Below, piece after piece: positions 25,371-58,530 of a DNA stretch of 64,000 nucleotides (within the stretch, counting starts at the first letter, position 1; every line of letters begins with the position of its first letter). Source of the stretch: Ostrea edulis (lineage: Eukaryota); assembly GCF_947568905.1 (NCBI RefSeq), contig NC_079167.1, positions 15,500,001-15,564,000 on the forward strand. Reading direction: 5' to 3'. The translations under genes and the position numbers were made by a program. Under the pieces are notes generated by a model that worked only from the letters and a program-made list of their open reading frames with translations, was not told the origin of the DNA and made no database searches.

Positions 25371-26487
25371 GACCCAGTGGGGACGGTATAGGTAGAATCA
25401 CGCTTTCCTGCCAGCTCTGTTGTCCTATGATAACTCTTGTTTTAAACCACTGTAGTTGGTCAAATTTGATGTTTATATAGTACAGTTTACATTGTCAGTA
25501 AAAATTAAAATAAAGTTTCATACATGTTGTGGTCTGTTAGAGAATCATTAATGATTGGTAATATTATCATTGTGAGAGTGATGGTTTAAAAAATGTTTGT
25601 ATTCACCTTCACATAATATTAATTTCATGTCGCTATCCTGTGAATTGCTGGTGCAAGATGAAGCAGAGTGTGAATATTCAAAAAGATATAAAATTTTGCT
25701 AGCAATTGCAATGCATTTCAAAACTAACAATATTAACCGATTCCGAAATTTCACGTGTCTAAACAACATGACACAGATGCTGAAACTAATATTATGTCTG
25801 TATGGATGTTCATGCCTATTTGAATATAATTTCCCTCTTATTTTAGATCTACTTTAATGAAGTTTAGTACATCTTTCTCTTCTATTTGTACACATCTATA
25901 TAAATTCATCTCTACATTCCTGAAATGTTTGGTGTGTCCAAATGTGGACTTGATCAATTTAATCCATATTCGTTTAACATTGTGAGAGTTTTAAATTATC
26001 CAGTAAATTCTTTAAGATTTCCTGAAGGCGAAATTCGTGGCAGTCACAATATTTAAAAACACACATTGCAACTTTAACTATTTAATCCCAAGGACATACA
26101 TTGTGCAATGGAAGTCCGTGAGAAGGTGTGCTAACACTTGAGACACAGCTCTTGAATTAAGATTCTGCTGTGCCCGTCATTTCAGAATTGCGTGGATATT
26201 AAAATGAAACATAAACAATTCCATGTAAGAAAAAATGAATTTAGAGCTCATTTTTAAATATACACGAGGAATTTATATTATCACGTAATTTAGCGATAAG
26301 CACCAATCGCGAAAGAAAGTACAGTTGTACTTAGCTTTCATTTTAGATTGCTGAACTTCTTGATCACCAGTCCATTTAGTCTCATGATTTGACGCCTACG
26401 AGTTATTTTGCGATATTAAATACTCGCGTGAAATATGGAATCTACTTTAAACACAAAGCAGTAACTTGATCCATTTCTACGTTACAG

Positions 26488-27314
26488 GTCTCTTTCTCCG
26501 TTTGCAGTCCAGGACAGCCAAAGACCACACATGTCACAAAAGCATCGAGTCTCTGGCTAAACATAAAGTCAGGGCATTCCTTAACCTCAGCAAAATGGCA
26601 GCTTTCCAAATCTCCAGGAATCCCCAGTCTAACGACTATCTCCAAATAAACTACACCCCAGGAAACGTATTCCTAGTGGAAAAAGTATTCCAAGGGTCCG
26701 CCCGCGTCAAGTCTGAGTCCATTCTGTCTCGGAAATCCACGCAAATTCAACAAATCAAATATCTAAAATGCAAAGATGAAAAGGATGTGGATGTTTTAAT
26801 TCCGATGTCGCAGCCAGGGGAGTTTATCGAAGCGCTTTCGAGTCCCACGGGTAACGGACGAATGTCTGTCAATGCTGAGAGCCTTATTGCTACGCAGAAG
26901 TTTCCAATCGTTATCCGCTTTATCAGCGGCAGAAACAGACCACGTCTGACGTCATTCTCGGGGCTTTTCACACTTTTAGACTCTTTTGAAGAAACGACCT
27001 TGTTTGGTTGCATTCTGGACCCACACGGTTTCACGATGCTGGAACTTCCGGTTTCTTCACCTCTGACTTTTCAGTTAGCACTCAATACGCATGATCTGTA
27101 TTCACACCCCGTGGTGAAGAAAGCTTTGCGCTTATGTGACGCAAAAGGACACGCGTATTTCAGAGAATTGAAGTATAAATTTAAATTTGCTCAAAGAATT
27201 CTTCAAATAAGCGGAAGACGAATTGAGCCGGAAGACGAAAACGATCCCGGTGATCCACCAAGTGCTGCAAATTCTGCCAAGTTCGGAGTGACCACCACTT
27301 ATATTTACCTGTGA
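26488..27314 (+). CDS. CABIT-domain protein B, exon 2
   Basis: gttacag acceptor; open to TGA at 27314. YLKCKDEKDVDVLIPMSQPGEF matches the CABIT core phi-x-C-x7-phi-x-(L/I)P-phi-x3-G-x-F. The spliced CDS is 1161 nt (386 aa). Confidence 0.85.
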
Positions 27315-34774: not shown

Positions 34775-37650
34775 TTTCCACCTCTACCTGTAAGCGGCCA
34801 CCATCAAAATGATGACTATTATGCCACTGTTCGGTATGCACATGTTAAAAACAAATACCGGTATATTGGCGAATGTCTATTTACAGGCGAGTTTAAAAAC
34901 AAACGAAACCAGTGGCTTATTGACGGAGATAAACCTTGAAAGCACAGTTGAGGTGGGTAAGGCATTCCACTCCTTGATGGAACGTGGGTAGAATGATTCC
35001 TTCCTCACTGATGTTCAACATGATGGAATTTGCACTGCCATAATGTTGTTATTCCTGGATGTTCTTTCTTGGATTTTTAGTTTCTCGCTAATGTCAATCT
35101 GAAGTTTATTGTTGATCAGCTTGTACATAACGCAGGGGCTGGATGTCCTTCGCCGCTCTTCTAACGATGGTCATCCAAGCTGATTAAGCATCTCGGTTAC
35201 AGACGAGGTGTTATGGTATCTGTTGTGGACATACCGGAGTGCTCTACACTGAATCATTTCAATCTTTGGAATATCTTACTTTTGATGAGGATTCCAGGCC
35301 GCACTCGCACACTCCACTGTTGGTCATATTAATGATTTATAGGCCTTTTCTTTGATTTTAGAATTGCTGGTGTTGATGTTTCTTTCGAGAAAGCCAATGG
35401 TGCTGTTTGCTTTAGCACAGATGCTATTTATGTGCTGGGTCCATTTCAAGTCTGTCGAGATTGTAACGCCGAGATAATTTGCTGATAGAATATGCTATAA
35501 TTGGTGGTCGTGTAATATGTGGTTCTTCATGATGATTTTCGATTTTTGGTGATGGTAAGCACATTACATTTTTCCGGGTGGAACCGCATGTTTTCCCAGA
35601 TTGCCAGTTGGTTCAGGTCGTCCTGGAGCTTCTCTGCATCTGAAGTGATAGTCATGTATGTCACGGTATCATCAGCAAAGAGTCGTATGGTCGATGAGAG
35701 GCCTTCCGGCATGTCGTTTATGTAAAATAGAAAGAGACTCAGTCCTAGGACAGAACCTTGTGGCACACCGGAGTCCACTGGGACCTCTTAAGATGATCCC
35801 CCCTCCACAACTAGACTTTGCTTGCGGTTTGTAAGGAAGCTTTGGATCCACTGGTTTGTCTTCCCTTTTATTCCATAATGGTTGAGCTTATGAATTAGAA
35901 GATTGTAGCTCACTTTATCAAATGCTTTAGAGAAGTCCATAATAAGGCAGTCAGTCTGTTTTCCCTTGTCGATGTTGATTGAGATATCTTCAATAAACTC
36001 TATGAGTTGAGTTTCACACGAGAGGCCTCTACCGAACCCATGCTGGAGTGGGTACATGATGTTATTGTCATCAGCATGATCTTGCTACGGATGCACGTCA
36101 ATGACACTGGCCTATAATTTACTGCCTCATATTTCTTCCCTTTCTTATATGTAGGGCTAATGTTGGTTGTTTTCCATAAGATGGGTACCTCTCCTGTTTG
36201 GTAAGAGTGATTGAAAATCACAGTAAGGATTGGCGCCAAAACATCTGCTAGTTCTTTAAGGACCCTTGGTGATATAGTATCTGGTCCTGGGGCTTTGGTT
36301 ACATTCAGCCCTTTGAGTAACTTATGGACTCCGTTTACTGTTATGTCTAGGTCTTCAATCCTGGGAAATCCACCCTTCATGTTGCATCGCTTACAAAACT
36401 CCTCAACTGTGATGTCCACTTTTTCCGAGAAGGCTTCCTGAAACTGCTTGTTTAGAATATTTGCCTTGCCTACTGATTCCTGGTGAAGAAGACCGTCCTT
36501 TTTTAAGGATGGTATACTATTACCGTCCGGCTTCCAATGTTTTGATGAAAGTCCAGAAACGTTACTTCTGTTTTGGTTCGCATCATCTGGTTCTGATTTT
36601 ATCATGTTGTCTATATACTTCCAATATGAACGTCGTTTCTCCTGCTGTGTTTTTCGTTTTAGTTCCTTGTAGTTGTTAACATCCTTTATATTTCCTGACC
36701 TTTTCTTTCTCTTATAACATGTGTTCCTTTTTCTTATCAATCTACGGACATCTCGTGTAATCCATGGTTTACTCTCCTTATTCCTGGCTAGCTTTGATGG
36801 TCTATGTTCCTTGATACTTTCTTCCAGTGCCTGTTGAAAATGGTTCCAAAGGTTATTGGTTTTAAGTGCACTGTCCCTCATAGATTCAATGCCAGATGAT
36901 ACTACTTTCATATCTTTCCTGATCTCGTCCCAGTTTGCCTTTCCGTATAATGGTATTTTACAAAGTCGTTGTTGTATTCTAGCTGGCATTACGTCTAGTT
37001 CTACAAATACTTCATCATGATCTGAAATACCAGGCATGGTCTCTACCCTGTTGACAGTCGATGGATGGTTCGTTACCACTAAGTCGAGTGTGTTCGTACC
37101 TCTTGTTGGAGTGACGACCATCTGATATAGTCCAAGGTCATCAAGAGTCTCTATGAATTTATTGTTTATCGTCACATAATGAGTTCCACTTTTAATACTT
37201 TTTGTTTCCCAATTTATTCCAGGCAGATTGAAGTCTCCTGCTGATATAATAACTGCATTGTTTACCCTGCATGATCTTTCCATACTTTTGTAATAACTTA
37301 GGAAGCCTTCTTCATTACTGGTTCTTGGATTGTAGAAGCTAGATAAATAGATTGTACGATGACAGACTAGGTTTAGCATACACCACACCATTTCACACTC
37401 CGTTTCGAATTCAGGCACTGATGAACTGAGATCCTTTTTAACTGCAATGATTACAACTCCTCCGCTAAGATTTCTGTCCTTGAGAAAGGTAGTAAAGCCC
37501 ATCGAGAGAAATTGTGAATCTTTAATAGAGCGGTCAATCCAAGTTTCAGTTCCAAAGATTACATCAGGATTTGTGGTCTCGATAAGGTTGAGTAATTCTC
37601 CCTGTTTTGTTTTAACTGACTTAAAATTAACATTTAAGAGTCATAGATTT
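34775..37650 (-). mobile_element. CR1-group LINE with degenerate APE endonuclease and RT
   Basis: APE motifs VIFGTETW, GDFNLP, NTLDLV and GISDH (36000-37600). RT motifs QHGF, DFSKAFD, GVPQGSVLG and RLFADD (35527-36057). Frameshifts and small deletions; boundaries are approximate. Confidence 0.9.
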
Positions 37651-37843
37651 CCCTTATACTTCCCATTACTGTGGTTTAATACTTTCTTCTACCAAATGGC
37701 ATCACCCATGGTTAACATCAACACCGCCTGGACTAACCGACTTTAGAATTGTTGTGGTGATCTTATCAGTACTGTGATCAATCGTAACTACTCGGCTGTT
37801 TCCGTAACCGACTACGGAAAAGGGCGAGCGCGTGATCCGATTG

Positions 37844-37896
37844 AACTCCGCCAACGCCGGTCCCAAGACCGGGTGCAAGAGGAGGAGGGTTGTGCG
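37844..37896 (+). ncRNA. Twister ribozyme (3' cleavage-product portion) at the RTE 5' end
   Basis: AACTCCGCC AAC GCCGGTCCCAAG(A)CCGG GTGCAAGA GGAGGAGGG matches the twister consensus. P2 is CTCC/GGAG, P4 is CCGG/CCGG, and the CCC/GGG pseudoknot is present. One conserved C is A (37868). Confidence 0.8.
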
Positions 37897-38217
37897 TGAG
37901 GCTAGCTCCCTCACCACGTAAAAAAACACGTTGCTACAGAAACCGAAGCAGCTGATCACACTACGATGTTTTGAGCGGACGAATAGACCCTTTGCTTCAG
38001 CAACATATGAAGAGAAATAGTGAAAGCGAGCAGGAAGCTATTTCTCCGAAATCATCTATATTGTCTCCAAAACGAATTTTAAGAATTGCATGTTGGAATG
38101 TTAGAACTATGTATGAGGCAGGAAAAACGAATCAAGTTGTTAAAGCGATGAATGAATATTCTATCAGCATTCTAGGAATTAGTGAATGTAGATGGACACA
38201 ATCTGGAGAGATTACCC

Positions 38218-38495
38218 ATAACTCAGAACATGTGATATGTTATTCAGGGAGAACTGATAACCCAGGACATGTGATATGTTATTCAGGGAGAACTGATAAC
38301 TCAGGACATGTGATATGTTATTCAGGGAGAACTGATAACTCAGGACATGTGATATGTTATTCAGGGAGAACTGATAACTCAGGACATGTGATATGTTATT
38401 CAGGGAGAACTGATAACTCAGGACATGTGATATGTTATTCAGGGAGAACTGATAACTCAGGACATGTGATATGTTATTCAGGGAGAACTGATAAC
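38218..38495 (+). repeat. 39-bp tandem repeat x7, in frame inside the RTE endonuclease
   Basis: CATGTG at 38229+39n up to 38463. Encodes HVICYSGRTDN seven times, joined by PG/SG. Confidence 0.95.
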
Positions 38496-41400
38496 AACCA
38501 TAAGAATGGAGTTGCAATCATTATGAGTAAAGATGCTAGTAAAGGACTTATCGGTTGGAAACCTATAAACGACAGACTAATAACAGCGAGATTTAATACC
38601 AACTATGGAAAACTGTCCATAATACAGTGCTATGCACCAACAAACGAATATACTGATGAAATGAAAGAGGAGTTTTATAACACATTGATTCTCTTAATCC
38701 AAGAAGTGCCAAAACACGATGTTTTGATGGTAATGGGAGACTTGAATGCTAAAGTTGGGCAAGATAACACTGGATTTGAGAACATTGTGGGAAAAGAAGC
38801 AGTTGGTTTAATCAACGATAACGGTGAACGACTTATAGAAATGTGTGTAACAAACAACCTAGTTATTGGTGGATCATTATTCCAACATAAGAATATACAC
38901 AAGACAACTTGGACATCGCCATCGGGAAGATCACATAATCAGATCGCTCACATCATGATAAACAGCAATTGGAGAACATCCGTCCAAGATGTGAGAGCTA
39001 TGAGAGGTGCTGACGTCTTCAGCGATCACAATTTGTTAGTAGCTAAAATTAAAGTTACAACAAATACCATTAGAAGTCAAGCGATGAAGGAACTAAAGCC
39101 ACCTTAAAGGAAAACTACGCCCCAACAAATAAAAACATTAAGAAAAGTGCACGAGCAGATAAAAATCATTATTTTGAAAGAAAAGCAGAAGAAGCAGATT
39201 ATGCGGCTAGACAAGGAGATCTTAAGACATTGTATAAGATTACTAAGCAGCTATCAGGCAACATACAAAACATGTCATCGTCAGTAAGAGATAAGGATGG
39301 AAAGCAGGTCAGTGGAGAGGAAGAACAGAGGAAAAGATGGAAAGAACATTTTGAAGAAGTTTTAAACAGAGGAACACCCGAAACACTACCAGATCTAAAC
39401 CACATAGAAACAGACGAGATAGAACAACTAGACATTAATCTTGGTGAAATTACAAAACAGGAAATTTGTTTTGCAATCAGAAAACTTAAATCAGGGAAGT
39501 CACCTGGAGTAGATGGAATCACAGCGGAAATGTTGAAAGTTGACGAAGTCTTCAATGCACACATGATGATTGACTTACTTAACACTGTTTGGACAAGTAA
39601 AAAGGTACCATTTGAATGGAAGAAAGGTGTCATCATAAAGCTTCCAAAAAAGGGTGATTTAACATTATGTGGAAATTGGAGAGGAATAACATTACTATCT
39701 GTTCCTGGTAAAATACTCTGTAAAATAATACTCGAAAGACTAAGGGATGCCATTGACCTGAAACTGAGAGAAGAAAAAGCTGGATTTAGAAGAAGTAGAT
39801 CCTGTACATATCATATTTTCACACTCCGTAACATCATTGAACAAGCTTTAGAATGGAGATCTACCATCTATTTAAACTTTGTCGACTTTGGAAATGCGTT
39901 TGACAGTATCCATAGAGAGACATTATGGGAAATCTTGAAATCTTATGGAATTCCAACAAAAATTATTGATATCATCAAGGATATGTATAATGGATATTGC
40001 TGCACAGTGAGACATGAGGGTAAACACTCAGAATGGTTCAACATCACATCTGGAGTAAGACAAGGATGTATCCTTTCTCCCTTTCTGTTCCTGATTACTG
40101 TAGACTGGATAATGAGAAAAATTACTAGAGAAAAAAGAGGTCTGCAATGGACACTTACATCTAGCCTTGAAGATCTTGATTTTGCAGACGATATTTGCCT
40201 CTTATCACACACACACAACCGGATATGCAAAGTAAAACATCTGAATTGCAATCTGAAGCATCAAGATTAGGACTGAAGATAAACTCTAAGAAAACAAAGA
40301 TAATGACAATCAATCCAAAGAACAGAAATACCATCAAGTTAAATGATACTGATTTAGAACAAGTTGAAAACTTCTGCTATCTTGGAAGCACGCTAGCGAA
40401 TAATGGTGACATTGGAGCAGAAGTTAAGATCGGGATAGGAAAGGCAGCGACAGCATTTAAAAGGCTAGATAACATCTGGAAAGCTAGAAGAATTGCAAAG
40501 GAAATTAAGATCAAACTATATAATAGTAATGTAAGAACTGTATTGCTCTATGGAAGTGAAACATGGAAGACAAACAAATTAATAGAATCAAAATTAAGAG
40601 GATTTGAAGGAAGATGTCTCAGAAAAATTCTTAAAGCACAATGGCCACAAATAATTTCAAACAAAGAAGTAGAGGAAAGAACTGGAGTTGGAGACATCAA
40701 TACAGAAATTAAACGGCGACGATGGAGGTGGATAGGGCATGTCCAGAGAATGGAAAGCAACATACATCCAAAAATAGGCTTTAGATGGACACCACAAGGG
40801 CAGAGAAAAGGGGGAAGACCTAAAGGAACTTGGAGAAGAACTGTAGAAGCAGAAATGAAAACAATTGGAATAACAATGGGAGAGGCAGAAAGAAAGGCAC
40901 AAGACAGAGACAGATGGCGAGCAGCTGTGGAAGCCTTATGCACTGACCAGTGTGAAGAGGACTAAGTAAGTAAGTAAGTGATCCGATTGTACAATCTTCA
41001 CCAGAGGGCGTGTTACGCTACGCTACACCACTATTATTAGTGGAGCATAGCGGGAACGATAATTCGGGGGTAGAGATTGCTCATATATTGTACTGTGTCG
41101 AATCATAATGACGTTGAACTATCTATATGACGTCAATGCTTTAAAAAAGGACTATGTGAAGATTCTAAGAATGATTTTATAATCAAATCATCGATATAAT
41201 GAAAATAAGGGATAGCCAAAATGAGAAGAAATTGAAGCTTCTCTTTCTTTTTCTCTTTTCCCCTTTTTTTCATATATTATTGTAATAATTGGTATATGAC
41301 TTAATATACTTAGAATTTTTCTCACTTGTAACATGATATAAGGCTTTTGGCTTGCTTCTCAATTTATTATAATGGACTGTATATAAACATTAATATCAAC

Positions 41401-46105: not shown

Positions 46106-48368
46106 AACAAATTTCATGAAATGCTCCGTGTGTAGCCTTTATCTTACAGCACACAAGGGAGAGGTCTGTGTCACAGTCAGCGCTGTAAAAAGTTCTGGTG
46201 ACAATAACCTGTTTGAGACCTCTACGTCTGGTAAGGACGAGGTCAAGCTGGTCAAGCTGGTGCTAATGTTTGGACCTCGGATGTTTCCAGGACACTCTGT
46301 GGTGAAGTATGTATGATAGGAGCAGAGTTCTTGAAAGTAAAAGAAAGAATTGTAACCATGTCCATGGTGTATTTACAACACATCAGACTTTCAAGGTCTT
46401 CAAAAGATTGTCCGATTTCCTTCAATTCTTAAATAATGGCAATTATGTAGCACTGGCAATCTCTCTGACTGCTAACTTCAAAGTGATTTAAATTTACAGA
46501 ATAAAACTCTCAAGAACTTTGACCTTCAAGACCTTCCAATAAAATTCCAGGAATACTTACAGTGACCAATCAAAGACTACTGACCTCTAAACTAGTCCTC
46601 TGCCTATACTTGTCTTGAATGAATAAAACACTAAAGACAACTCTTATTCTAAAGAAAGATAACTCTGGTTATACTTCAGTAATAGAAACATGCAGTGCTG
46701 GTTAGTAATATGTACATGTATTTTATATAAGTAATAAATTTGTATTATTTATTTACAAGTATTTAATTGGTATATCAATACTTAATTTTAGATTATTTTA
46801 AGTTTAAAAACACTTCAAAATAATACATTATCACATCAATATACATGTATATAGTTTTCAGTTTTTCACATTGCAACGGACAGTGTAGAGGGAATTTATA
46901 CTGCCTCGATCGCTAGTGATCTAGCATTTCTAGTGATGTGGTATAGTCTCTCTCGTTAAACAATATAGTGGCAGCGTAGTGACTCAGATGTTTGATGGGA
47001 GGCTCTCTTCAGGTAGAGTCTCTTCGGAGCTTTGGGTACGAACATGGTTTCGTCCAGGGACGACGGGTGATTGTTGTCGGTAACGGCGGATGCCGTTGTT
47101 AAAGAGGTGCCAAACATTCAGAGAGAACTTACACTAGACTGGGGGACGAAACTTCCCAAGCTGGGAAAGTGTAGCGAACAGTATGGAGGGATGTTATGGT
47201 GGCAGGGGACAGTTTCTTTGGTTTTGAAACATGTGGATAGGGGGTATACACCAAAGTCAGATTATGACAGACTAATGAAAAATCATATTTCCATTTTATG
47301 TCAATACTTGTATTTCATATTAGTGTAGTTAATAAATTATTACCCTAAATTACATGTAATCTATAAATACTGGTGCTGGTGCACAAAACATGCTCTGAGC
47401 AGGTTCCCCTTTTTTGCTTTGATTTTCCCTCATTTGGGCTAATCCGCACCACCCCCACACCATCACAGTACCAAACATGGGGATTTAGACACTGTGCACA
47501 ATCAAGAACCCTATCTGCCCTTCTCAAAAATCTACCTCTCATATGGGGCCATCCACCTTCCCTCACAGCTACAGACCTTTTGCTGGACCCTGCATGTTTT
47601 CACCGGAATTTCTTCAGCAACTGACCACGTGTCTTAGTTTCGTATTTGCACCCATCTATATGCTAGGAATCATGGTGACACCTACATGTTGTATATCAAC
47701 ATTTTTATTAAGCACTCAGCTACATTTGACATGCATCCTAAAATTATTGTATACATTTTTACACATGTAATATCACTTCAAATACGGGGTAATTCCATTT
47801 TTTGAAAAAGTTGACCGGGCCTATAGTGCCGGGCCTATAGTGCCAAACTGTCCCCTGCTACCTATACTGTCTCACTATAGAGTTAGCTTTTCTAGTGTTG
47901 TAGTAGAGTCACTTAAGCAACGGCTAGCGTGATAGGTATATATAGACGTCGCGCACGGTACTGGTGTTACTTTCATACGTGCATTAGAAAATGTTTCCGC
48001 TATGTTTACACAGTTGTATATTTTGTGGATTATTAAAGTCGTATACATCAATGGCAAGGAAAATATATAAATAATGATAATAGCTTATATAAAATATAAT
48101 TTACACGCATTTCATTAGCAATAAATACACGCAGATGTCGTCATTTTTCGTTGTCCCGCGTTACATGAAATACGCATACGCTTTATCCACAGATTAATAA
48201 AATGATTGATTTTGTCCCAAATAACGTAAGAATTGGTGTATGATTGTGACGTCCTTATCTAAAAACCATAAACCAATTACTTTAAACATTTAGTTCATAG
48301 AATTGATATAGCGACCTTAAAAATGGCAAAGACAGTGCCTGTCAGTGGTGTCCCGTGTTTGTAGATAG

Positions 48369-49142
48369 TGTGATGAAAGTATTGTAAGGTGGATTGAAAC
48401 ATACTTTATGATAGACCAATCAGATGGTGTAATTCTTATCCAATCAGCATTGTTTAGCCATCCAATCATAATCTTAGTATAAGTAGCCAATCATTGTTGA
48501 TCAACCTAAGACCAAAGGGTATAAATAGAGCCGTCCTGTCATCTTTAGTTTTTTTGTTGGAACTCGAACTCGATTGAGGTCTTTTGACTGGTAGTATTGA
48601 GTTGGTATTCAGGACAAGCTTGGGGTTGTGTCGGAAAGCAACAGAATTGTTAGCTAGGCCACTCAGCTCCTACACTTGGTCCTTTGTGCCTTTGTGACTT
48701 TAGAATTCTGTCTTGGTGACTTGTTTCAGGGATAGTGTCTCGGTGACTTTCCCAGGTGATAGGACGGTAGAGAGCTTAGGTTAGGTGGCTGCAGACTGTG
48801 TCGGGAAACAACAGAATTGTTTGTTATACCACTCAGTCTGTAGCTACTTAAGTTATACATGTATTTGTGATTTCTCGTATCGATTAGTCTGATTATTTTT
48901 TACTATTAGCTCATGGTTTGTTTAATGATCAACCAAGTAGGACCAAGGAAAATATTATTCCGGGTTTTAGTCAGTTAGCCTATCCTGGTTTATTTATTAA
49001 CGTTAATGTTATTGTTCCTGTTCGTCTGCAACGAAGATAGATACGTGACAGTAAGTGTATTATAATTGAACTTAATTTCTTAGGAAGGAAACCTAAGCGA
49101 ACTCATTGATTTTCTGATCATTTATTAGGTAAATACGTTACA
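48369..49142 (+). repeat. 5' LTR
   Basis: Matches 55156-55929 with about six substitutions counted by eye. Confidence 0.95.
48416..48527 (+). promoter_or_regulatory. LTR promoter: four CCAATCA boxes and a TATA box
   Basis: CCAAT at 48416, 48440, 48462 and 48487; TATAAATA at 48520-48527. Confidence 0.65.
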
Positions 49143-49147
49143 TAATT

Positions 49148-49160
49148 TGGTGGCAGCGGT
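49148..49160 (+). other. Primer-binding site complementary to the tRNA-Leu 3' end
   Basis: TGGTGGCAGCGGT, 5 nt after the LTR, is the complement of ...ACCGCUGCCACCA (tRNA-Leu type, from memory). Confidence 0.75.
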
Positions 49161-49246
49161 TAAAGGAAAATTAAGTTTCATTGTTAGTTTTGATCATTGA
49201 TATTGCTGTATAGGCATCACTGTTGTTTTTCTTTGTTGACGGAGAC

Positions 49247-50953
49247 ATGTCTAATATCGACGAAATTGACAGAGAAATAACTCTGATTGAGAAACAGTTG
49301 GCGGAATTAAAAAGTGAGAGTTTTGATATGCGTAACACTACAAAAACAGCAAGTGCTGATGTAGAGTCGGGTAAAACTTTTACCCCTGTGTTACATCCTG
49401 ACACACGACCTCGAGACTCGGGGTTTGTGTCTAATAGAACATCTGAAATAGATTATCATGGTGATGTCAAACCTAAATTACGCTCGACTGAAAGGGTTAG
49501 ATTTCAAATTGATGATACAAAATGCGGCACTGAAGATGTCTCATACAGTAATGTTGAACACGGTAACCATGATTATTTTAGTCAAACATCAACACTTATT
49601 TCTCAGTATTTGCCGAAGTCAAATATAACACGCCGACGAAATATTCCGGGATACAACACTGCGCGTCTAGACGACAGGATCAACAATACTGGTTTTACAG
49701 ACACAGAAGACAAGAGATTAAAGTCTAACATTAAGCCAGCAACATTTGATGGCACGGGATCTTGGCTAGATTATCGTTCGCATTTTGATGCATGTGTCAT
49801 GTTAAATAGATGGACAGAACGTGATAAAGGTCTCTATTTAGCAGTTTCCCTACGTGGACAAGCACAAGGTGTGCTGGGAAACTTGCCTGGTACACATAAG
49901 CATGACTACACATTACTAGTTAATGCATTAGAAGAAAGGTTTGCACCTTCAAACCAAAATGAATTATATAGAACTCAGCTGCGACAGCGCAGACAAAAAG
50001 CAACAGAAACGTTGCCGGAACTAGGTCAGTCTATTAGAAGACTCACTAACCTAGCCTATCCAACGGCTCCAGGAGATGTTAAAGAGACCTTGGCAAAAGA
50101 GCAGTTCATCGATGCTCTTTTGGATTATGATATGAGAATGAGAGTAAAGCAAGCGAGACCGTCAAATCTAAACGATGCAATAAGACATGCCGTGGAACTA
50201 GAAGCGTCTGTAAAATCGGATCGTAAAGTGCTAGAATCACAAACTCATTTACGACCAATGCACTCAGAAAAGGCAGATACTAGCAAACGGAATCATACTG
50301 GTGTTGATTCTTTAAAAGCTAATGACCTGCTGGTTTTGAAAGACGAAATAGCGAAACTTCGAAAGGGAGTTAGTGAATTAAAGGCTAATACTTCGAGGAC
50401 TGGTACATACAAGAAAGTAGCAACTAATCCACATAACAGGCGATGTTATTTGTGTGGATCAGAGTATCATTATCGTGCTGACTGCCCACAAGAGGTAAAT
50501 CAGACCAATAATAAGCCAAGTAATCGAAATAAGAAACACCACAAACAAAGCACATTCAAGTGCATTACCTCTAAAAGAGCGCAAATAGGCGTCAACCAAA
50601 ATGACCTAGAAGTTGGCATGTATGTAAGAGCCAATGTTCACGGGGTAGAAACAAATTTGCTTATTGATACGGGAGCTACTTTGTCGGTGTTGTCCAATAG
50701 AATTTATCAAGTAATAGAAAAGAAACCTCTGTTGTATCACACTGATCAAAAGGTCGCCTCTGCGACTGGAACCGATCTGTCTGTCATAGGAAAAACGTCT
50801 CTCAATATCAACTTGGGCAATGTCATCTACAATCAAGATGTCATAGTAGCGGATTTATCTTTAGATGGTGTTATTGGATTGGATTTCATGAGGAAATATG
50901 ATTGCACAATTGATATCAAGAAAGGGAATTTTAAGATTGGCGACAAATGCTGA
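49247..50953 (+). CDS. Gag plus aspartic protease
   Basis: KPATFDGTGSWLDYRSHF...LAVSLRGQA capsid region, CCHC knuckle CYLCGSEYHYRADC and protease LLIDTGATLSVL. Confidence 0.9.
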   Translation: MSNIDEIDREITLIEKQLAELKSESFDMRNTTKTASADVESGKTFTPVLHPDTRPRDSGFVSNRTSEIDYHGDVKPKLRSTERVRFQIDDTKCGTEDVSYSNVEHGNHDYFSQTSTLISQYLPKSNITRRRNIPGYNTARLDDRINNTGFTDTEDKRLKSNIKPATFDGTGSWLDYRSHFDACVMLNRWTERDKGLYLAVSLRGQAQGVLGNLPGTHKHDYTLLVNALEERFAPSNQNELYRTQLRQRRQKATETLPELGQSIRRLTNLAYPTAPGDVKETLAKEQFIDALLDYDMRMRVKQARPSNLNDAIRHAVELEASVKSDRKVLESQTHLRPMHSEKADTSKRNHTGVDSLKANDLLVLKDEIAKLRKGVSELKANTSRTGTYKKVATNPHNRRCYLCGSEYHYRADCPQEVNQTNNKPSNRNKKHHKQSTFKCITSKRAQIGVNQNDLEVGMYVRANVHGVETNLLIDTGATLSVLSNRIYQVIEKKPLLYHTDQKVASATGTDLSVIGKTSLNINLGNVIYNQDVIVADLSLDGVIGLDFMRKYDCTIDIKKGNFKIGDKC

Positions 50954-53900
50954 CAATGTTGAATTAGTCGGTTACATAGGTTGTTTCAGAATCACTTCAA
51001 AGGAAGTTGTCAATATTCCGGCAAGAAGTGAAGTCGTGACATATTGCCGTGTCATAAAACCACACGAGTATTGTCAAGCGAAGGACGTTTTAGGTTTAAT
51101 TGAACCTTCAGAACGGTTTCTCAGATCGGGAAAAGCATTAGTAGCGAGAACAGTGGGCTACATAAAGGATGGGGAAGTGCCAGTTCGTATGATGAATCCT
51201 TCTCATGACTATCAAATAGTGTATCCAGGTACATTTGTTGCAACGTTGAGCACAGTTGAAACTGTATATGATACCCCACCCATTCATGGTACAAGTAGCA
51301 GTGAAAAATATAGCGATCTACCTGCCCACCTGCAAGACCTTTTCCAAAGATCTAAATCCAAGTTGACCACGGATGAGACATTTAAATTAAAACAATTCTT
51401 ACTTGACTATAGCAACATATTTGCCACATCAGATAAAGATTTGGGACGTACTGCACTAGTGAAACACACAATCGACACCAACAATGCTCGTCCGTTGAAA
51501 GAGCCTCCTAGAAGAATACCACATCATTTAGAGGATGAAATGAACAAACAAGTGGATGATTTGCTTAGCAGAAATATAATAGAAGAATCCAATAGTCCTT
51601 GGGCATCGGGTGTAGTTTTAGTGAAAAAGAAAGATGGTTCATTACGGTTTTGTGTGGACTACAGGCGTCTGAATGCTGTCACAATTAAAGATGCTTACCC
51701 ATTACCACGCATAGACGATTCACTAGACAGTCTCGCTGGAGCAAAATGGTTTTCCACTCTTGACTTGTGCTCAGGTTACTGGCAGGTTGGCATGGATGAA
51801 GCGGATAGACTAAAAACGGCATTTGCGACAAAGCGTGGACTATTTCAATTTAATGTCATGCCATTTGGCCTATGCAACGCCCCAGCAACTTTTGAAAGAC
51901 TGATGGAATCTGTATTGAGTGGGTTGCAATGGCAAATATGCTTGGTATATCTTGACGATATTATCGTGATGGGTACATCGTTTGACAACATGTTGAATAA
52001 TCTAACAAAAGTATTTGATAGACTATTATCAGCTAATTTGAAATTAAAGGCAAAGAAATGTCACTTGTTTCATAAAACTGTGCAGTTTCTCGGATACGTG
52101 GTGTCAGAAGATGGAGTCACGACAGATCCTTCAAAAATCGATGTAGTGAGAAATTGGTCGACTCCACAAAATCTTACGGAAGTAAAAAGTTTTCTTGGCC
52201 TTTGCAGTTACTATAGGCGTTTTATTTCAAACTTCGCCGCAAAAGCAAAGCCACTTAACAGATTGACTGAAAATGGTGTAAATTTTAAATGGACTGACGA
52301 CTGTCAAGCATCATTTGATTGTTTACGTCATGCACTCATATCTGCACCAATATTAGCCCATCCAGATTTTTCTCAGTCATTTATTTTGGATACAGACGCA
52401 AGTGATGTAGCCATCGGAGCAGTTCTTTCTCAGATACAGAATGGTGTTGAAAAGGTGATTGCTTTTGCGAGCCGAACACTATCAAAAGCGGAAAAAAAAT
52501 ATTGCGTTACACGGAAAGAACTTTTAGCTGTAGTCTATTTTACGAAATATTACAGACATTACCTTTATGGCAAACAGTTTTTAGTTAGAACTGACCACAG
52601 CTCTTTAAAATGGCTTATGAATTGCAAAAATCCGGAAGGTCAACTAGCGCGTTGGTTTGAAACTCTAAGCAATTTTCAAATAAGCATAGATCATAGACCG
52701 GGAAAAAAACATACTAATGCAGATGCATTGAGTAGAATTCCCTGCAAAAAGGTGTGTTGTACTGCACAAGTTGTGAACACATTACATAGCACATCTTCAA
52801 CTCTGAATGACGAAAAAACGTCTCTGAAATGGAAACAGAGAGAGGATAAGGACATAAGCATGCTTATAAAGTGGGTTGAGATAGGAACAAAACCACCGTC
52901 ATCTGAGATATCAGGACAAAGTCAATTCGTGAAAGCCATCTGTTCTCAATGGGATGCACTGGTGATAGAAGCTGATATGTTGTTTCGAAAGAAAAAACAG
53001 AAGAAAGGTGCAGATCAGTTGCAAGCCATCGTACCATTTAGCGAGAGGCGTATACTCTTAGGACAATACCATGATGAAAGAACCTCTGCTCACCTCGGTA
53101 TAAAGAAAACATTAGCAAAAATAAAAACCAAGTACTACTGGCCAGGATTACAGAAGGATGTCAAATTGTATATTGCAGGATGTGAAAAATGCCAAAGACG
53201 CAAATCACCTAATACAACCAAAAAGGCACCAATGCAAGTATTCACTTCTGGTTCGCCTATGGAACGCATTGCTAAAGACATATTGGGCGAACTTCCGAAG
53301 TCTAACAATGGTAACCGATATATTTTAGTCGTGTCAGATTACTTTACAAAATGGACTGAAAGTTTTCCTATGGCAAATATGGAGGCCGCAACTGTTGCAA
53401 AAATAATAGCAGAGCAAGTCATTACACGTTTCGGCGTGCCCGGCATTATACACTCTGATCAAAGGGCCCAATTCGAGAGTCATCTTTTCACGGAAATGTG
53501 TCGTCTTTTGAATATTAAGAAAACCCACACGACACCATACCACCCACAATCGGATGAAATGGTTGAAAGATTCAATAAAACACTGACGACAATGCTGTCT
53601 GCGTACGTTAATGACCATCATGATAACTGGAATGAACACCTTCCATATGTAATGATGGCTTACAGAGCAGGTATTCATGAAACAACAGGTGCTACGCCCA
53701 ACAAAATGATGTTGGGTCGAGAGGTTGCAACACCTTTTGATATTGTTTATGAAATGCCTACCGATATCAAACGAATACCCCAGAACACATGGGTATGGGA
53801 ATTACAGGAAAAGTTAGAAGAAGCGCACAATACTGTCAGAAAAATGTCCGAAGATAATATCCAAAGACAGAAGTGGTATCATGATAGGAAATTAAACTGG

Positions 53901-54254
53901 CAATCACTTAGATCTGGTGATCAGGTTTACGTTTATTTTCCAAAACGTCGAATTGGAACGTCTCCCAAGTTTTCTTCGTACTGGCAAGGCCCTTTTGAAA
54001 TCATTGAGAAGTGTTCCAGTGTTACATATAAAGTAAATTGCGGACCTAGAGGAGCAAATCAGATCATTCATACTGACCGTATACGACCTTTATTTCGACA
54101 AATACTGACTTTTGAACCAGTAAATTTCCCTACCACAAATGATGTTCCTGACAAAAGTGTTGATTCTGAAGTTGAGAGTGACAATGAATGTCTGACTGAT
54201 ATTAAAAGACATAAAAAGCAACCAGCCTATTTAGCTGATTATGTTTTAGATTAA
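50898..54254 (+). CDS. Pol (RT, RNase H, integrase), +1 frame relative to gag-PR
   Basis: RFCVDYRRLN, YLDD, ILDTDASD, HHCC zinc finger (H..TSAH...CEKC), integrase D-D-E and C-terminal GPF. Confidence 0.93.
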   Translation: MIAQLISRKGILRLATNADNVELVGYIGCFRITSKEVVNIPARSEVVTYCRVIKPHEYCQAKDVLGLIEPSERFLRSGKALVARTVGYIKDGEVPVRMMNPSHDYQIVYPGTFVATLSTVETVYDTPPIHGTSSSEKYSDLPAHLQDLFQRSKSKLTTDETFKLKQFLLDYSNIFATSDKDLGRTALVKHTIDTNNARPLKEPPRRIPHHLEDEMNKQVDDLLSRNIIEESNSPWASGVVLVKKKDGSLRFCVDYRRLNAVTIKDAYPLPRIDDSLDSLAGAKWFSTLDLCSGYWQVGMDEADRLKTAFATKRGLFQFNVMPFGLCNAPATFERLMESVLSGLQWQICLVYLDDIIVMGTSFDNMLNNLTKVFDRLLSANLKLKAKKCHLFHKTVQFLGYVVSEDGVTTDPSKIDVVRNWSTPQNLTEVKSFLGLCSYYRRFISNFAAKAKPLNRLTENGVNFKWTDDCQASFDCLRHALISAPILAHPDFSQSFILDTDASDVAIGAVLSQIQNGVEKVIAFASRTLSKAEKKYCVTRKELLAVVYFTKYYRHYLYGKQFLVRTDHSSLKWLMNCKNPEGQLARWFETLSNFQISIDHRPGKKHTNADALSRIPCKKVCCTAQVVNTLHSTSSTLNDEKTSLKWKQREDKDISMLIKWVEIGTKPPSSEISGQSQFVKAICSQWDALVIEADMLFRKKKQKKGADQLQAIVPFSERRILLGQYHDERTSAHLGIKKTLAKIKTKYYWPGLQKDVKLYIAGCEKCQRRKSPNTTKKAPMQVFTSGSPMERIAKDILGELPKSNNGNRYILVVSDYFTKWTESFPMANMEAATVAKIIAEQVITRFGVPGIIHSDQRAQFESHLFTEMCRLLNIKKTHTTPYHPQSDEMVERFNKTLTTMLSAYVNDHHDNWNEHLPYVMMAYRAGIHETTGATPNKMMLGREVATPFDIVYEMPTDIKRIPQNTWVWELQEKLEEAHNTVRKMSEDNIQRQKWYHDRKLNWQSLRSGDQVYVYFPKRRIGTSPKFSSYWQGPFEIIEKCSSVTYKVNCGPRGANQIIHTDRIRPLFRQILTFEPVNFPTTNDVPDKSVDSEVESDNECLTDIKRHKKQPAYLADYVLD

Positions 54255-54274
54255 TGAATTTTATTTTGTAGATC

Positions 54275-55003
54275 ATGCCCAAAACAAAGGTCACTTCAAG
54301 AAAGTCATCTTTAAAGTGCCCTATGTGTCCTTACCAAGCAGAAACATCAGAAAATATGGAAAAAAAACATCTTGTCTCCTGTGGACTCCAGATAGTTGCG
54401 GATAAAACATTGCAATGTAGCTTATGCCCTTTTAAAACAACAAAACATGCCTACCTTAAGCGACACACGAGAACAATGCACCAACCACGTGAAACTGCTG
54501 TACAATTGAGTGCTGATTTGGATCTGTCTGACTCAAGCGATTGGGATAATGAACCCAACATTTCAATTGAAGAGGTTCAAACTAAACAACCTTGTGAGGA
54601 AAGGAGCATCTCTTGTATTTCACAACAAGAAGATTCTCCTTGCGCTGACACAACGCCTCGGTTAGCGTCAGTACCATCCCTCCAGCTAGGTCGTGTCTTT
54701 CGCCAGCCAACGAAACCTGTATTACCCGGAAAGAAGCGAAAAAGCGAGCCTGTACTTCCAGTTTTTGCCCTAGGAAAAGCCGTAAAACAAATGGAGGAAG
54801 GAAAATCTCACGGAGAAGTTGAACATCCTCAAGAGAAAATCTTAACTGAAGAGTGTCCAAATCCTTTTCATACAACTACCTCCAATGTTGGTGTGCAAAC
54901 AGACTTTCCCAAACATGTAAAGTCTACTAAGAAGATTGTAGAGTATGTTAAAGACAATGCTACAGTGAAAGAAATCACCGAAGATCGTTACGAATACTAT
55001 TAA
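54275..55003 (+). CDS. ORF3: 242-aa protein with two N-terminal zinc fingers, inside the LTR element
   Basis: CPMC-x13-H-x3-C and CSLC-x12-H-x4-H. Preceded by a ttttattttgtag acceptor-like site 3 nt before the ATG. Lies between the pol stop and the PPT. Confidence 0.75.
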   Translation: MPKTKVTSRKSSLKCPMCPYQAETSENMEKKHLVSCGLQIVADKTLQCSLCPFKTTKHAYLKRHTRTMHQPRETAVQLSADLDLSDSSDWDNEPNISIEEVQTKQPCEERSISCISQQEDSPCADTTPRLASVPSLQLGRVFRQPTKPVLPGKKRKSEPVLPVFALGKAVKQMEEGKSHGEVEHPQEKILTEECPNPFHTTTSNVGVQTDFPKHVKSTKKIVEYVKDNATVKEITEDRYEYY

Positions 55004-55140
55004 CTTGTTAAAAATCATGATGGTGTAGAAAACAATTTATCAAAGATTTCCTGACAGGAGATACCTGTTCATTTGATTATAATAAAGATACTTTTAACCA
55101 TTGAATTTTAGTCTGCCTTTGCGAGGACGCAATTTTTTTT

Positions 55141-55155
55141 CGAAGGCGTGGGTAA
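55141..55155 (+). other. Polypurine tract (imperfect)
   Basis: CGAAGGCGTGGGTAA immediately before the 3' LTR TG. Confidence 0.55.
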
Positions 55156-55929
55156 TGTGATGAAAGCATTCTAAGGTGGATTGAAACATACTTTATGATA
55201 GACCAATCAGATGGTGTAATTCTTATCCAATCAGCATTGTTTAGCCATCCAATCATAATCTTAGTATAAGTAGCCAATCATTGTTGATCAACCTAAGACC
55301 AAAGGGTATAAATAGAGCCGTCCTGTCATCTTTAGTTTTTTTGTTGGAACTCGAACCCGATTGAGGTCTTTTGACTGGTAGTATTGAGTTGGTATTCAGG
55401 ACAAGCTTGGGGTTGTGTCGGAAAGCAACAGAATTGTTAACTAGGCCACTCAGCTCCTACACTTGGTCCTTTGTGTCTTTGTGACTTTAGAATTCTGTCT
55501 TGGTGACTTGTTTCAGGGATAGTGTCTCGGTGACTTTCCCAGGTGATAGGACGGTAGAGAGCTTAGGTTAGGTGGCTGCAGACTGTGTCGGGAAACAACA
55601 GAATTGTTTGTTATACCACTCAGTCTGTAGCTACTTAAGTTATACATGTATTTGTGATTTCTCGTATCGATTAGTCTGATTATTTTTTACTATTAGCTCA
55701 TGGTTTGTTTAATGATCATCCAAGTAGGACCAAGGAAAATATTATTCCGGGTTTTAGTCAGTTAGCCTATCCTGGTTTATTTATTAACGTTAATGTTATT
55801 GTTCCTGTTCGTCTGCAACGAAGATAGATACGTGACAGTAAGTGTATTATAATTGAACTTAATTTCTTAGGAAGGAAACCTAAGCGAACTCATTGATTTT
55901 CTGATCATTTATTAGGTAAATACGTTACA
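55156..55929 (+). repeat. 3' LTR
   Basis: 774 bp, ends TACGTTACA, followed by the ATAG TSD. Confidence 0.95.
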
Positions 55930-56194
55930 ATAGACTGCAAATGCAAATCATCATGACCAGTAGCACGCCTAATACAGGGGGAAGTTGACTATTCTTGTTA
56001 CATTTATAATGTACATGTATCGTAGAGCACAATGTATACCAGTATTATAAAATTCCGAGTATATCCATGAAGTAGATTGATTTTATCGGTGTCCAGTGAA
56101 ATGTCCTTATTCTACAAACACCGCGCTTTTTAAACAATTCTACCATTTTATGTCTTATTTCTAAGCATTATTCCAACACGAATATTTTAATGAA

Positions 56195-58530
56195 TAATGT
56201 TTTACGGCGTGACCGTGTTTGAGGGCGAAGCAAAAAAGTTTTGGCATTAGCATCTATATCCAACACAGGGCAAAAATAACCCGAAGTTAGCACGAGGACA
56301 GAGCTGTATCAAAGCATCCTTTTGGACATTTGATCCGCCTATATATTGAACGCGGGAAATATAACGCAATCGATGTAAACAATACATTGTGACGTCATAT
56401 TCAGCGTCGTTATTTAGCAAATTTACAAACATAGCGTTTGAACCACAACAAAAACATGGCAATAATCGTGGAGTGATTATATATGATTAAGAAAATAAGG
56501 TTTACATGCTTTTACGGATTTTATGTAACATCTCAGAACGACGTGAACTAGGGTAGACGAGATTCAAAATAGAGGAATACATGTCCACGCGCTAATATTC
56601 GAATCGACGCCATTGGTACCAAACTTTTCAAGTTCCATAGGTATGGTTTAATTTTTCATTATTTTCCTATATTTTCCTTTTAAACATGTATATACGTGTT
56701 ACCTATAGGGAGAGCTCCGCTCTCACGGCCCTTCGGGCCGTGAGAGGGCTTCGCCCTCTATAACTTACAGAAAGTACATAAAATTTACTATATAGAATAT
56801 ATATACAACATTTCATTTTATCCCGCGTTCATTTAGGAAAACGAAAAGATACTTAATGTCCAAATAAATGTCCCATGTGATTTTGTCGCGCAATGACGCG
56901 ACGTCAATGTACACAACCTACGTCTAGCTAAAACGTAAAATGTTGCTTTTATTATTTTTGAAAGATCTAAATTAAAATGATTTTTGAAAATAGTATACAA
57001 GGTATTTAAGCTATAGCATGTGTATCTCATAGATATGTTTTGCTCTAGATCTGGTACATATACTTTAATTGACTTTATCAAATGACAATTGTACAGACTA
57101 CATTTTGTTGCATGTACTACTGTATGTCATCGTCGCAAACCACGGGTTATTGTTTCATTCTATTTCACAAACGTTTGTGAAATAGAATGAAACAATAACC
57201 CGTGGTTTGCGACGATGTACTGTATGTATGCATATAAAAATTCAGCATTGAACAGATACACTTACGGTGTGTAAAACGTTGCAATATTATAGAGGGCGAA
57301 GCCCTTTCACGGCCCTAAGGGCCGTGAGAGCGGAGCTCTCCCTATAGGTAACACGTATATACATGTTTAAAAGGAAAATATAGGAAAATAATGAAAAATT
57401 AAACCATACCTATGGAACTTGAAAAGTTTGGTACCAATGGCGTCGATTCGAATATTAGCGCGTGGACATGTATTCCTCCATTTTGAATCTCGTCTACCCT
57501 AGTTCACGTCGTTCTGAGATGTTACACATAAAATCCGTAAAAGCATGTAAATCTTATTTTCTTAATCATATATAATCACTCCACGATTAACGCCATGTTT
57601 TTGGTTGTGGTTCAAACGCTTTGTTTGTAAATTTGCTAAATAACGACGCTGAATATGACGTCACAATGTACTGTTTACATCAATTGCGTTATATTTCCCG
57701 CGTTCAATATATAGGTGGATCAAATGTCCAAAAATTAGGATGCTTTGATACAGCTCCGTCCGCGTGCTAACTTCGGGTTGTTTTTGTCCTGTTTTGGATA
57801 TAGATACTAATGTCAAAACTTTTTTGCTTCGCCCTCAAACACGGTCACGCCGTAAAACATATTACAAATCTTGATTTATATACGAAACTCTTTAATCATA
57901 TTCGATAATCTTGTTATTCATATATGAGAAAATTTTAATTATATTCGATAATCTTAATAGAGGGCGAAGCCCTCTCACGGCCCTAAGGGCCGTGAGAGCG
58001 GAGCTCTCCCTATAGGTAACACGTATATACATGTTTAAAAGGAAAATATAGGGAAATAATGAAAAACTAAACCATACCTATGGAACTTGAAACTTTTGGT
58101 ACTAATGGCGTCGATTCGAATACTATCGCGTGGACATGTATTTCTCCATTTTGAATCTCGTCTACCCTAGTTCACGTCGTTCTGAGATGTTACATAAAAT
58201 TCGTAAAAGCATGTAAATCTTATTTTCTTAATCATATATAATCACTCCACCATTAACGCCATATTTGTTGTTGTGGCTCAAACGCTATGTTTGTAAATTT
58301 GCTAAATAACGACGCTGAATATGACGTCACAATGTACTGTTTACATCGATTGCGTTATATTTCCCGCGTTCAATATATAGGCGGATCAAATATCCAAAAT
58401 TAGGATGTTTTGATACAGCTCCGTCCTCGTGCTAACTTCGGGTTGTTTTTGTTCTGTTTTGGATATAGATACCAATGCCAAAATTTGTTTGCTTCGTCCT
58501 CAAACACGGTCACGCCGTAAAACATATTAT
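56195..58530. mobile_element. Three copies of a ~570-bp non-autonomous element (Helitron/Helentron-like)
   Basis: Copies at ~56195-56761, ~57289-57864 (inverted relative to the first) and ~57958-58530. Each has the subterminal inverted motif GAGGGCGAAGC and a CTCTCACGGCCC-GGGCCGTGAGAG hairpin. Confidence 0.7.
57128..57217. mobile_element. Perfect 90-bp palindrome with 10-bp flanking direct repeats (minimal MITE)
   Basis: The 45-bp arm CATCGTCGCAAACCACGGGTTATTGTTTCATTCTATTTCACAAAC is followed immediately by its reverse complement. TACTGTATGT occurs at 57118-57127 and 57218-57227. Confidence 0.85.

Follow-up and report, generated by a model that had tools for sequence, protein, structure and literature searches.

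To our knowledge, accessory genes are rare in the long terminal repeat (LTR) retrotransposons of animals, and CERV of the C. elegans Gypsy/Ty3 element Cer1 is the only one with a known role. CERV is a non-envelope nuclear protein that is encoded in the env position and made from a spliced mRNA (PMC10309623). Here we describe an accessory open reading frame, ORF3, in the env position of a Ty3/Gypsy retrotransposon that lies in a 64-kb stretch of the genome of the oyster Ostrea edulis (contig NC_079167.1; the whole stretch is called the window). ORF3 resembles CERV in position and concept only, and profile, PDB and fold searches gave no homology of sequence or fold between the two. Unlike ORF3, CERV measures 517 aa, lacks zinc fingers and carries a leucine zipper; its five exons have peptides in common with Gag (PMC10309623). 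The role of CERV in the export of genomic RNA has been demonstrated, whereas the role of ORF3 is proposed here from sequence analysis.

Plant LTR retrotransposons also carry accessory ORFs (aORFs), for example the one in Grande, whose product is nuclear (PMC7264820; cited in PMC8220671), and these like ORF3 lie in sense orientation in the 3′ internal region. Most plant aORFs are of unknown function, some of their products are nuclear, and none is reported to combine a finger pair with an LC8-type motif. They belong to another kingdom and are unrelated in sequence; the ORF3 family, unlike them, is conserved across bivalve orders. The env genes of errantiviruses and retroviruses follow pol, as ORF3 does, and are expressed from a spliced subgenomic mRNA with an acceptor just upstream of the start codon. 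Complex retroviruses encode transactivators and RNA-export factors 3′ of pol from spliced mRNAs. These factors and ORF3 share the idea of supplementing gag-pol with a small nuclear regulator that is in part disordered, but ORF3 sits in a retrotransposon without env, and PDB and fold searches gave no homology between them. Among host proteins, the transcription factor ASCIZ/ATMIN has N-terminal C2H2 fingers followed by a disordered region with LC8 motifs of the TQT type, and LC8 binding sets the oligomeric state of this DNA-binding factor (PMC5963919, PMC10046861). The layout is like that of ORF3. In comparison, ASCIZ has twice as many fingers (four against two) and 7-11 LC8 motifs to the single motif of ORF3, which a beta-hairpin follows; there is no homology past the generic fingers. 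The earlier note on this DNA knew of no characterised example, and full-text literature searches agree with it, having turned up no account of this ORF; ORFs are not a subject of the main survey of LTR elements in molluscs. Accessory ORFs in LTR retrotransposons are already known, and what is new is the ORF3 protein family and its set of modules.

We find that ORF3 is a genuine gene under purifying selection across a clade of Gypsy elements of pteriomorph bivalves, namely oysters and scallops. The earlier note, made from the letters of the window, had reported an intact 242-codon frame 20 nt past the pol stop and inside the LTRs, and its coordinates are correct (Table 1). Relatives were first sought by a word-based search, which returned six clusters of proteins with identities of 45-72%; three are Magallana gigas proteins labelled 'uncharacterized'. 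Exact-sequence look-ups of the window ORF3 and of P0002 and P0009 gave no match. Scoring the position wherever upstream DNA existed for a locus, we find that homologues share the place after pol in four oyster-type lineages and in the Argopecten elements. In the oyster-type loci (L001, L002, L004-L008, L010-L012 and L014-L017), whose pol is 70-84% identical to that of the window, the homologue lies 17-20 nt past the pol stop. The earlier proposal of an element-encoded gene in the env position therefore holds in sister lineages and across bivalve families.

Performing codon comparisons by the Nei-Gojobori method, we find that the window ORF3 and that of L010 have a dN (nonsynonymous rate) of 0.164 and a dS (synonymous rate) of 1.59, and that L011 and L001 give a dN/dS of about 0.13 near saturation; dS is saturated in the deep pairs. 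Four closer Magallana-type copies gave dN/dS values of 0.21-0.37 (Fisher p 2e-3 to 9e-7). This is the purifying selection (about 0.1-0.37) that the earlier note had wanted to see. The pol gene in the same pairs has a dN/dS of 0.07-0.10. Constraint on ORF3 varies by module. It holds the C-terminus most strongly (72-92% identity, with a ratio of nonsynonymous to synonymous differences, pN/pS, of about 0.05-0.1), as well as the fingers, the acidic motif and the central basic motif, and two linkers are unconstrained (5-17% identity in deep pairs). As a separate observation, the synonymous difference pS in the window-L010 pair is higher for ORF3, at 0.66, than for pol, at 0.48. This might stem from recombination between lineages, from codon constraints that differ, or from additional constraints on pol RNA.

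A profile search against 1.84 billion representatives (E <= 1e-3) gave 685 matches of two classes. The first comprises long multi-finger host proteins, which align at the finger pair only. The second comprises about 30 proteins of 190-340 aa that align along most of the profile, and its named sources are scallops (Argopecten irradians, Pecten maximus, Mizuhopecten yessoensis) and oysters (Saccostrea echinata, Saccostrea cucullata, Ostrea edulis, Magallana gigas). Members of the family are frequently multi-copy and are labelled 'uncharacterized' or, automatically, 'RE1-silencing transcription factor-like'. Two of the large multi-finger matches, an ostracod protein (P0055) and a ladybird protein (P0062), give no evidence that ORF3 originated from them, as their likeness is confined to repeated generic finger pairs.

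In three Argopecten copies (L024-L026), a 272-aa relative that is 29% identical to ORF3 stands past pol and ahead of the 3′ LTR, about 110 nt from pol. The Argopecten pol is 51-53% identical to that of the window, and the element has a period of 7.3 kb. In each of the three copies pol is in at least two frames, and the ORF3-like gene is intact and identical in all. Lineages are ranked alike by the divergence of ORF3 and of pol, which argues that the gene was already part of the element before the oyster and scallop element lineages split and has moved with it ever since. One of these loci (L025:2652-17572, Argopecten irradians CM084265.1) is a tandem LTR-internal-LTR-internal-LTR array, with three identical LTRs and two complete internal regions at a period of 7310-7311 bp.

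An alternative is that ORF3 arose by chance or is a host exon captured recently and drifting neutrally. The automatic RE1-silencing name in RefSeq and the resemblance of the finger pair to pairs in large arthropod host zinc-finger proteins speak for it. However, the host-protein likeness is restricted to generic finger pairs, the gene keeps its position in elements whose pol is only about half identical, its pN is far below its pS, and six modules are conserved across 21-31% identity. Position, selection and module conservation together refute this alternative, which we find barely credible; of the outcomes that the earlier note had named as fatal to its claim (loss in sister copies, neutrality, a captured exon), the data show the opposite. 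In RefSeq, P0068, P0139 and P0243-P0247 of Saccostrea echinata and Ostrea edulis are filed as host 'RE1-silencing transcription factor(-B)-like' genes. All of these are transposon genes, and the REST-like name is an automatic one that comes from generic finger similarity.

A locus from Logan (L022:1-1192, SRR14865062) is a gag-pol-deleted derivative with an intact 252-aa ORF3 homologue. Its 5′ leader, which matches L004:27-273, meets the ORF3 part at a 3-nt microhomology some 20 nt upstream of the ATG. A spliced subgenomic copy was considered for L022 and rejected, since a microhomology junction without GT..AG marks an internal deletion derivative. A non-autonomous copy of this kind, which keeps the accessory gene alone, would place ORF3 first on the LTR transcript.

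The ORF3 protein is soluble, 27 kDa in size and largely disordered. Using an alignment of 37 sequences (A8), of which 30 are distant relatives at 21-31% identity, we recognise six family-wide modules: a basic N-terminus, the finger pair, an acidic W/DPG motif, R-x-x-T-x-P with a K/R cluster, [GA][VIT]QT[DE] and a hairpin. Three of these (the N-terminus, R-x-x-T-x-P and the hairpin) go beyond the earlier note, as do the spread to scallops and many oyster genera and the splice-acceptor-like context of the ATG. A Pfam match to YozE_SAM_like over the C-terminus (E about 2.5e-3 to 0.017) was sub-threshold and bacterial, and was ignored.

The C2HC and C2H2 fingers that the earlier note had read from the letters are real modules. 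Each zinc ligand is retained in 27-30 of the 30 distant relatives, and AlphaFold2 with the 37-sequence alignment folds the pair into two beta-beta-alpha units at a predicted local distance difference test (pLDDT) score of 91-96. The hairpin scored 85-92 and the remainder was disordered. With 12 close sequences the prediction had a mean pLDDT of 42 and was uninformative. Relatives of ORF3 match Pfam finger families at E = 4.3e-9 (PF13909) and 6.9e-10 (PF23223). The nearest structures are tandem DNA-binding C2H2 fingers (ZNF524, CTCF, ZBTB10, BCL11A, ZFAT), though Foldseek against PDB and BFVD gave generic C2H2 neighbours only, none at E <= 1e-3. In the helix of finger 2, position -1 is K/R in 34 and position +6 is R in 36 of the 37 sequences. 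Such fixed positions argue for a single conserved nucleic-acid target and not for the fast-changing LTR.

The position after pol raises the question of whether ORF3 is a degenerate envelope gene. We found no signal peptide in the protein and no hydrophobic or membrane segment (maximum Kyte-Doolittle 19-residue mean 1.07; grand average of hydropathy -0.79), just as the earlier note had argued. The protein consists of a zinc-finger fold and disorder, and searches of Pfam, PDB and BFVD returned no envelope family. In contrast to Env, it is a soluble disordered zinc-finger protein without signal peptide, anchor or fusion machinery. The lack of any hydrophobic segment refutes the envelope reading, to which we give practically no credence.

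What the earlier note had called an acidic Ser-rich linker is indeed present at aa 81-100, but it is not a mere spacer, as a conserved W/DPG motif lies inside it. The motif reads W-x3-DPG-[DE]-L in the distant relatives and W-D-N-E-P in the window, and would be typical of acidic activation or interaction regions. In the central basic motif, which across the family takes the form hydrophobic-x-R-x-x-T-x-P, R143 is retained in 28, T146 in 29 and P148 in 29 of the 30 distant relatives. A K/R cluster follows within 10 residues in most relatives; in the window it is the KKRK at aa 153-156 that the earlier note had likened to a nuclear localization signal (NLS), and such a cluster is indeed family-wide. 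It matches the monopartite pattern K-K/R-x-K/R in an exposed region, as a pattern match only. R-x-x-T-x-P in a disordered region is a pattern that we take to be of the basophilic-kinase or 14-3-3 mode-I type, and it stands beside the import-like signal. Masking of an NLS by 14-3-3 is known (PMC12017986).

The resemblance of VGVQTD (aa 205-210) to an LC8-binding motif has also stood up. LC8 binds an eight-residue strand in a disordered region with an anchor of the TQT type, in which Q is the most conserved residue; mid-size hydrogen-bonding or hydrophobic residues are preferred at -1 and +1 and P, D or E at +2, prolines before the anchor and bulky residues at -2 are penalised, and the best binder ends in G-T-Q-T-E (PMC6607443). 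The family motif [GA][VIT]QT[DE] agrees with every one of these published rules, and its context is disordered (pLDDT <60 for aa 195-210). Among the 30 distant relatives, Q208 is kept in 28, T at +1 in 26, V/T/I at -1 in 26, G/A/S at -2 in 25 and D/E at +2 in 23. The retention of the VQTD motif at only about 25% identity is the strongest argument for LC8. The usual layout of an LC8 client is a motif followed by a self-associating element.

The same LC8-type motif and NLS-like cluster, both conserved, would also suit a trafficking or integration-targeting factor, which would travel with the nucleoprotein complex of the element, LC8/dynein and the K/R cluster carrying it to the nucleus and the fingers tethering the complex to particular chromatin. 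The integrase has no chromodomain by Pfam, so a separate targeting module is conceivable, the conserved recognition residues of the fingers would suit a conserved host target, and some gene models read ORF3 as a C-terminal extension of integrase. However, the frame of ORF3 differs from that of pol in all oyster lineages and the offset is not constant. In the two models that fuse integrase to an ORF3-like part (P0211 and P0164), the start Met and the N-terminal motif are kept inside, so that they are most simply explained as over-extended models or mutated copies. LC8, moreover, is now viewed mainly as a dimerisation hub and not as a dynein cargo adaptor (PMC6607443). We consider the targeting role distinctly improbable.

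The N-terminal motif starts at the Met in every case, over-extended gene models included. Another possibility is that ORF3 antagonises silencing by mimicking the tail of histone H3, as a decoy or competitor for H3K4 or H3K9 readers or writers, brought to the element by the fingers and dimerised by LC8. After Met removal, the mature N-terminus of the window protein matches H3 residues 1-10 (PMC8166343) at 6 of 10 positions, with T3-K4 and R8-K9-S10 in register. Among 35 family members, T3 is found in 23, K4 in 28, T6 in 29, R8 in 21 and K9 in 21, and residue 2 (P in the window) allows Met removal in 31. N-terminal H3-tail mimics (H3TMs) are enriched among chromatin-binding finger proteins (PMC8166343), and a transposon-silencing complex of Drosophila includes LC8 dimerisation (PMC7861614), with which an LC8 binder could interfere. 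The described H3TMs have in common with the predicted mature ORF3 protein a free N-terminus after Met removal, K4 in register, a link to zinc-finger chromatin proteins and a motif that is bound to the N-terminal end. Their rule iM-Z-R-X-K, however, fails at R2, which is K in 17, N in 9 and R in none of the 35 members, and the ORF3 match reaches R8-K9-S10, which is not required in H3TMs. A basic stretch rich in T, K and R near fingers may have other causes, T-P-R-K (19 of 35) also suits a proline-directed kinase site, a PDB search with the N-terminal 24 residues gave no histone, and the likeness was noticed post hoc. Mimicry of H3 by ORF3 is in our view clearly unlikely. A little less probable still is the full proposal that a bivalve retrotransposon clade carries an LC8-dimerised H3-tail mimic as a countermeasure that diverts or blocks H3K9/H3K4-reading silencing. 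If true, this would be the first case of a transposable element encoding a mimic of a histone tail.

Signals around the start of ORF3 and in U5 point to a spliced subgenomic mRNA for ORF3, as for env genes and CERV. The context TTGTAG/ATY-ATG is invariant across all oyster-type lineages though synonymous sites are saturated, and the unrelated scallop spacer of 110 nt ends in CTTTCAG/G-ATG. A pyrimidine tract followed by AG precedes only 1.8-3.5% of the ATGs in the window. The donor-like octamer GTAAGTGT of U5 is also found at the corresponding point of the Magallana-type LTR, with a 29-nt invariant block just downstream. ORF3 could instead be expressed by coupled termination-reinitiation, but this alternative is weaker, and the 110-nt scallop spacer disfavours it.

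The 29-nt block stands out between the window and Magallana-type LTRs, which are otherwise mostly unalignable. It holds a hairpin (stem of 6 bp, purine loop of 7 nt) and could be a packaging, dimerisation or protein-binding site. It may offer a conserved RNA target to a CERV- or Rev-like cofactor whose fingers would bind the nuclear unspliced genomic RNA and aid its export or packaging, with multimerisation supplied by LC8 and the hairpin of the protein. The genomic position and the likely spliced expression are as in CERV, which is needed for the export of unspliced genomic RNA (PMC10309623). The splicing of ORF3, if real, creates the intron-retention problem that such factors solve, and the conserved recognition residues of the fingers suit a conserved target. 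The RNA-binding CHHC finger protein Gtsf1 is among the structural neighbours, at E = 0.2 only. Against this, folding of the U5 RNA is no better than that of shuffles (z = 0.56), profile, PDB and fold searches gave no similarity to CERV or to RNA-export factors, no leucine-rich export signal was identified in ORF3, and the closest structural matches are DNA-binding fingers. We regard an RNA-handling cofactor as rather unlikely, and transcriptional activation as somewhat more likely than RNA handling as the role of ORF3.

Our preferred reading is that ORF3 encodes an element-borne nuclear nucleic-acid-binding regulator, and we lend it somewhat more belief than doubt. A nucleic-acid-binding domain, an acidic W/L region, an import-like signal and a dimerisation device together make up the architecture of a nuclear regulator. 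From these features we infer splicing, a nuclear location, dimerisation by LC8, nucleic-acid binding and a regulatory role for ORF3. In the proposed mechanism, splicing to the acceptor-like site before the ATG would yield a subgenomic mRNA for the ORF3 protein, which the K/R cluster would bring into the nucleus, perhaps under the control of phosphorylation at the neighbouring Thr. LC8 and the hairpin would make it a dimer, the fingers would then engage a conserved nucleic-acid target in the element, and host machinery recruited by the acidic motif would raise expression of the element at the level of transcription or RNA handling.

Several observations weigh against the nuclear regulator. The helix of finger 1 is acidic, a finger pair by itself is usually a weak binder, and the C2H2 match of the window ORF3 in Pfam is sub-threshold (21 bits against a cut-off of 27). 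The conserved recognition residues could mean that the target is host DNA or RNA and not the element. In the same pairs, ORF3 exceeds pol in dN by a factor of 2-4. The fetched contigs contained no spliced junction, and all that reach upstream are colinear with pol. Each protein has a single LC8-type motif, and many TQT-containing peptides fail to bind LC8 (PMC6607443). Some Magallana-type copies, moreover, yield an ORF3 shortened by one premature in-frame stop. Damaged copies are to be expected of a transposon, and many of the Magallana-type contigs with the stop are probably the same loci in different sequencing runs; Logan and metagenome contigs are not countable as independent copies, and the genome of the window is itself represented by one copy only.

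The element that carries ORF3 (48369-55929, 7561 bp) is a complete, young Ty3/Gypsy LTR retrotransposon whose LTR pair is 99.2% identical (6 of 774 nt differ). Its LTRs are direct and end in TG..CA, it has a polypurine tract, a target-site duplication and a primer-binding site 5 nt from the 5′ LTR, and its domains stand in the Gypsy order of protease, then reverse transcriptase, then RNase H and finally integrase by Pfam, as expected of this group. The gag part gave a weak Retrotrans_gag match and a weak CCHC knuckle in Pfam. In the window copy gag-pol is in two frames with one frame change, at a point where L004 and L011 are continuous; the cause is a programmed shift confined to the lineage or else one break. 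The U3 of both LTRs contains four CCAAT boxes 22-25 nt apart (48416, 48440, 48462 and 48487 in the 5′ LTR), with a TATAAA downstream of them at 48520 (region 48416-48525). Two to four CCAAT boxes at similar spacing are seen in the Magallana-type LTRs. The CCAAT-box array and TATAAA suggest an NF-Y-type promoter.

Table 1 Positions of the annotated features in the window.
Feature	Coordinates	Strand	Remarks
Target-site duplication ATAG, 4 bp	48365..48368 and 55930-55933	+	flanks both LTRs
5′ LTR, 774 bp	48369..49142	+	TG..CA ends
Splice-donor-like GTAAGTGT in U5	49051..49058	+	putative function
29-nt U5 block	49077..49105	+	invariant, window and Magallana-type LTRs
Primer-binding site, 12 nt	49148..49159	+	complementary to tRNA 3′ end with CCA; same in L005
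gag-pol	49247..54254	+	annotated as single gene; pol stop ends at 54254
Aspartyl protease domain	50618..50923	+	Pfam
Reverse transcriptase and RNase H domains	51621..52676	+	Pfam
Integrase: H2C2 zinc domain, catalytic core, C-terminal SH3/p58_C domain	53031..54089	+	Pfam
pol-ORF3 spacer, 20 nt	54255..54274	+	T-rich tract, then TTGTAG/ATC before ATG
ORF3 accessory gene	54275..55003	+	242 codons and stop, ATG start, intact
N-terminal motif x-K/N-T-K-x-T-x-R-K	54278..54307	+	aa 2-11, right after Met
Finger 1, C2HC	54317..54382	+	C15, C18, H32, C36
Finger 2, C2H2	54416..54481	+	C48, C51, H64, H69
Acidic Ser/Asp-rich stretch	54515..54574	+	aa 81-100, W-x3-(D/E)P motif
Central basic motif	54680..54742	+	L-x-L-G-R-V-x-R-x-x-T-x-P, then P-G-K-K-R-K (NLS-like)
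LC8-type motif	54881..54904	+	aa 203-210, anchor V-Q-T, then D
C-terminal beta-hairpin	54914..54997	+	aa 214-241, best-conserved module
Polypurine-tract-like stretch	55142..55155	+	adjoins 3′ LTR
3′ LTR, 774 bp	55156..55929	+	6 mismatches with 5′ LTR
Endonuclease ORF	36003-37502	-	
Endonuclease ORF	37971-39104	+	
Non-LTR reverse transcriptase	39230-40267	+	
DUF6451 ORF	40195-40962	+	

Elsewhere in the window, non-LTR retrotransposon fragments lie on both strands at 36000-41000. Just downstream of the Gypsy element, a direct repeat about 666 bp long occurs twice at 57289-58529, its copies 94-95% identical, with short tandem repeats of 20-26 bp at its edges. An ORF at 26466-27314 with a CABIT domain match (E = 1.2e-6) is probably an exon of a host gene.

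Next to CERV, the ORF3 family is a second, unrelated accessory-gene family, found in oysters and scallops, multi-copy, under purifying selection and modular, and its recognisable modules make its partners predictable. Filing the family under host genes makes counts of host zinc-finger genes too high. Horizontal transfer and amplification in transmissible neoplasias give bivalve retrotransposons a broader interest. If our reading is true, the ORF3 regulator would contribute to the way in which these elements govern their expression or evade silencing by the host.

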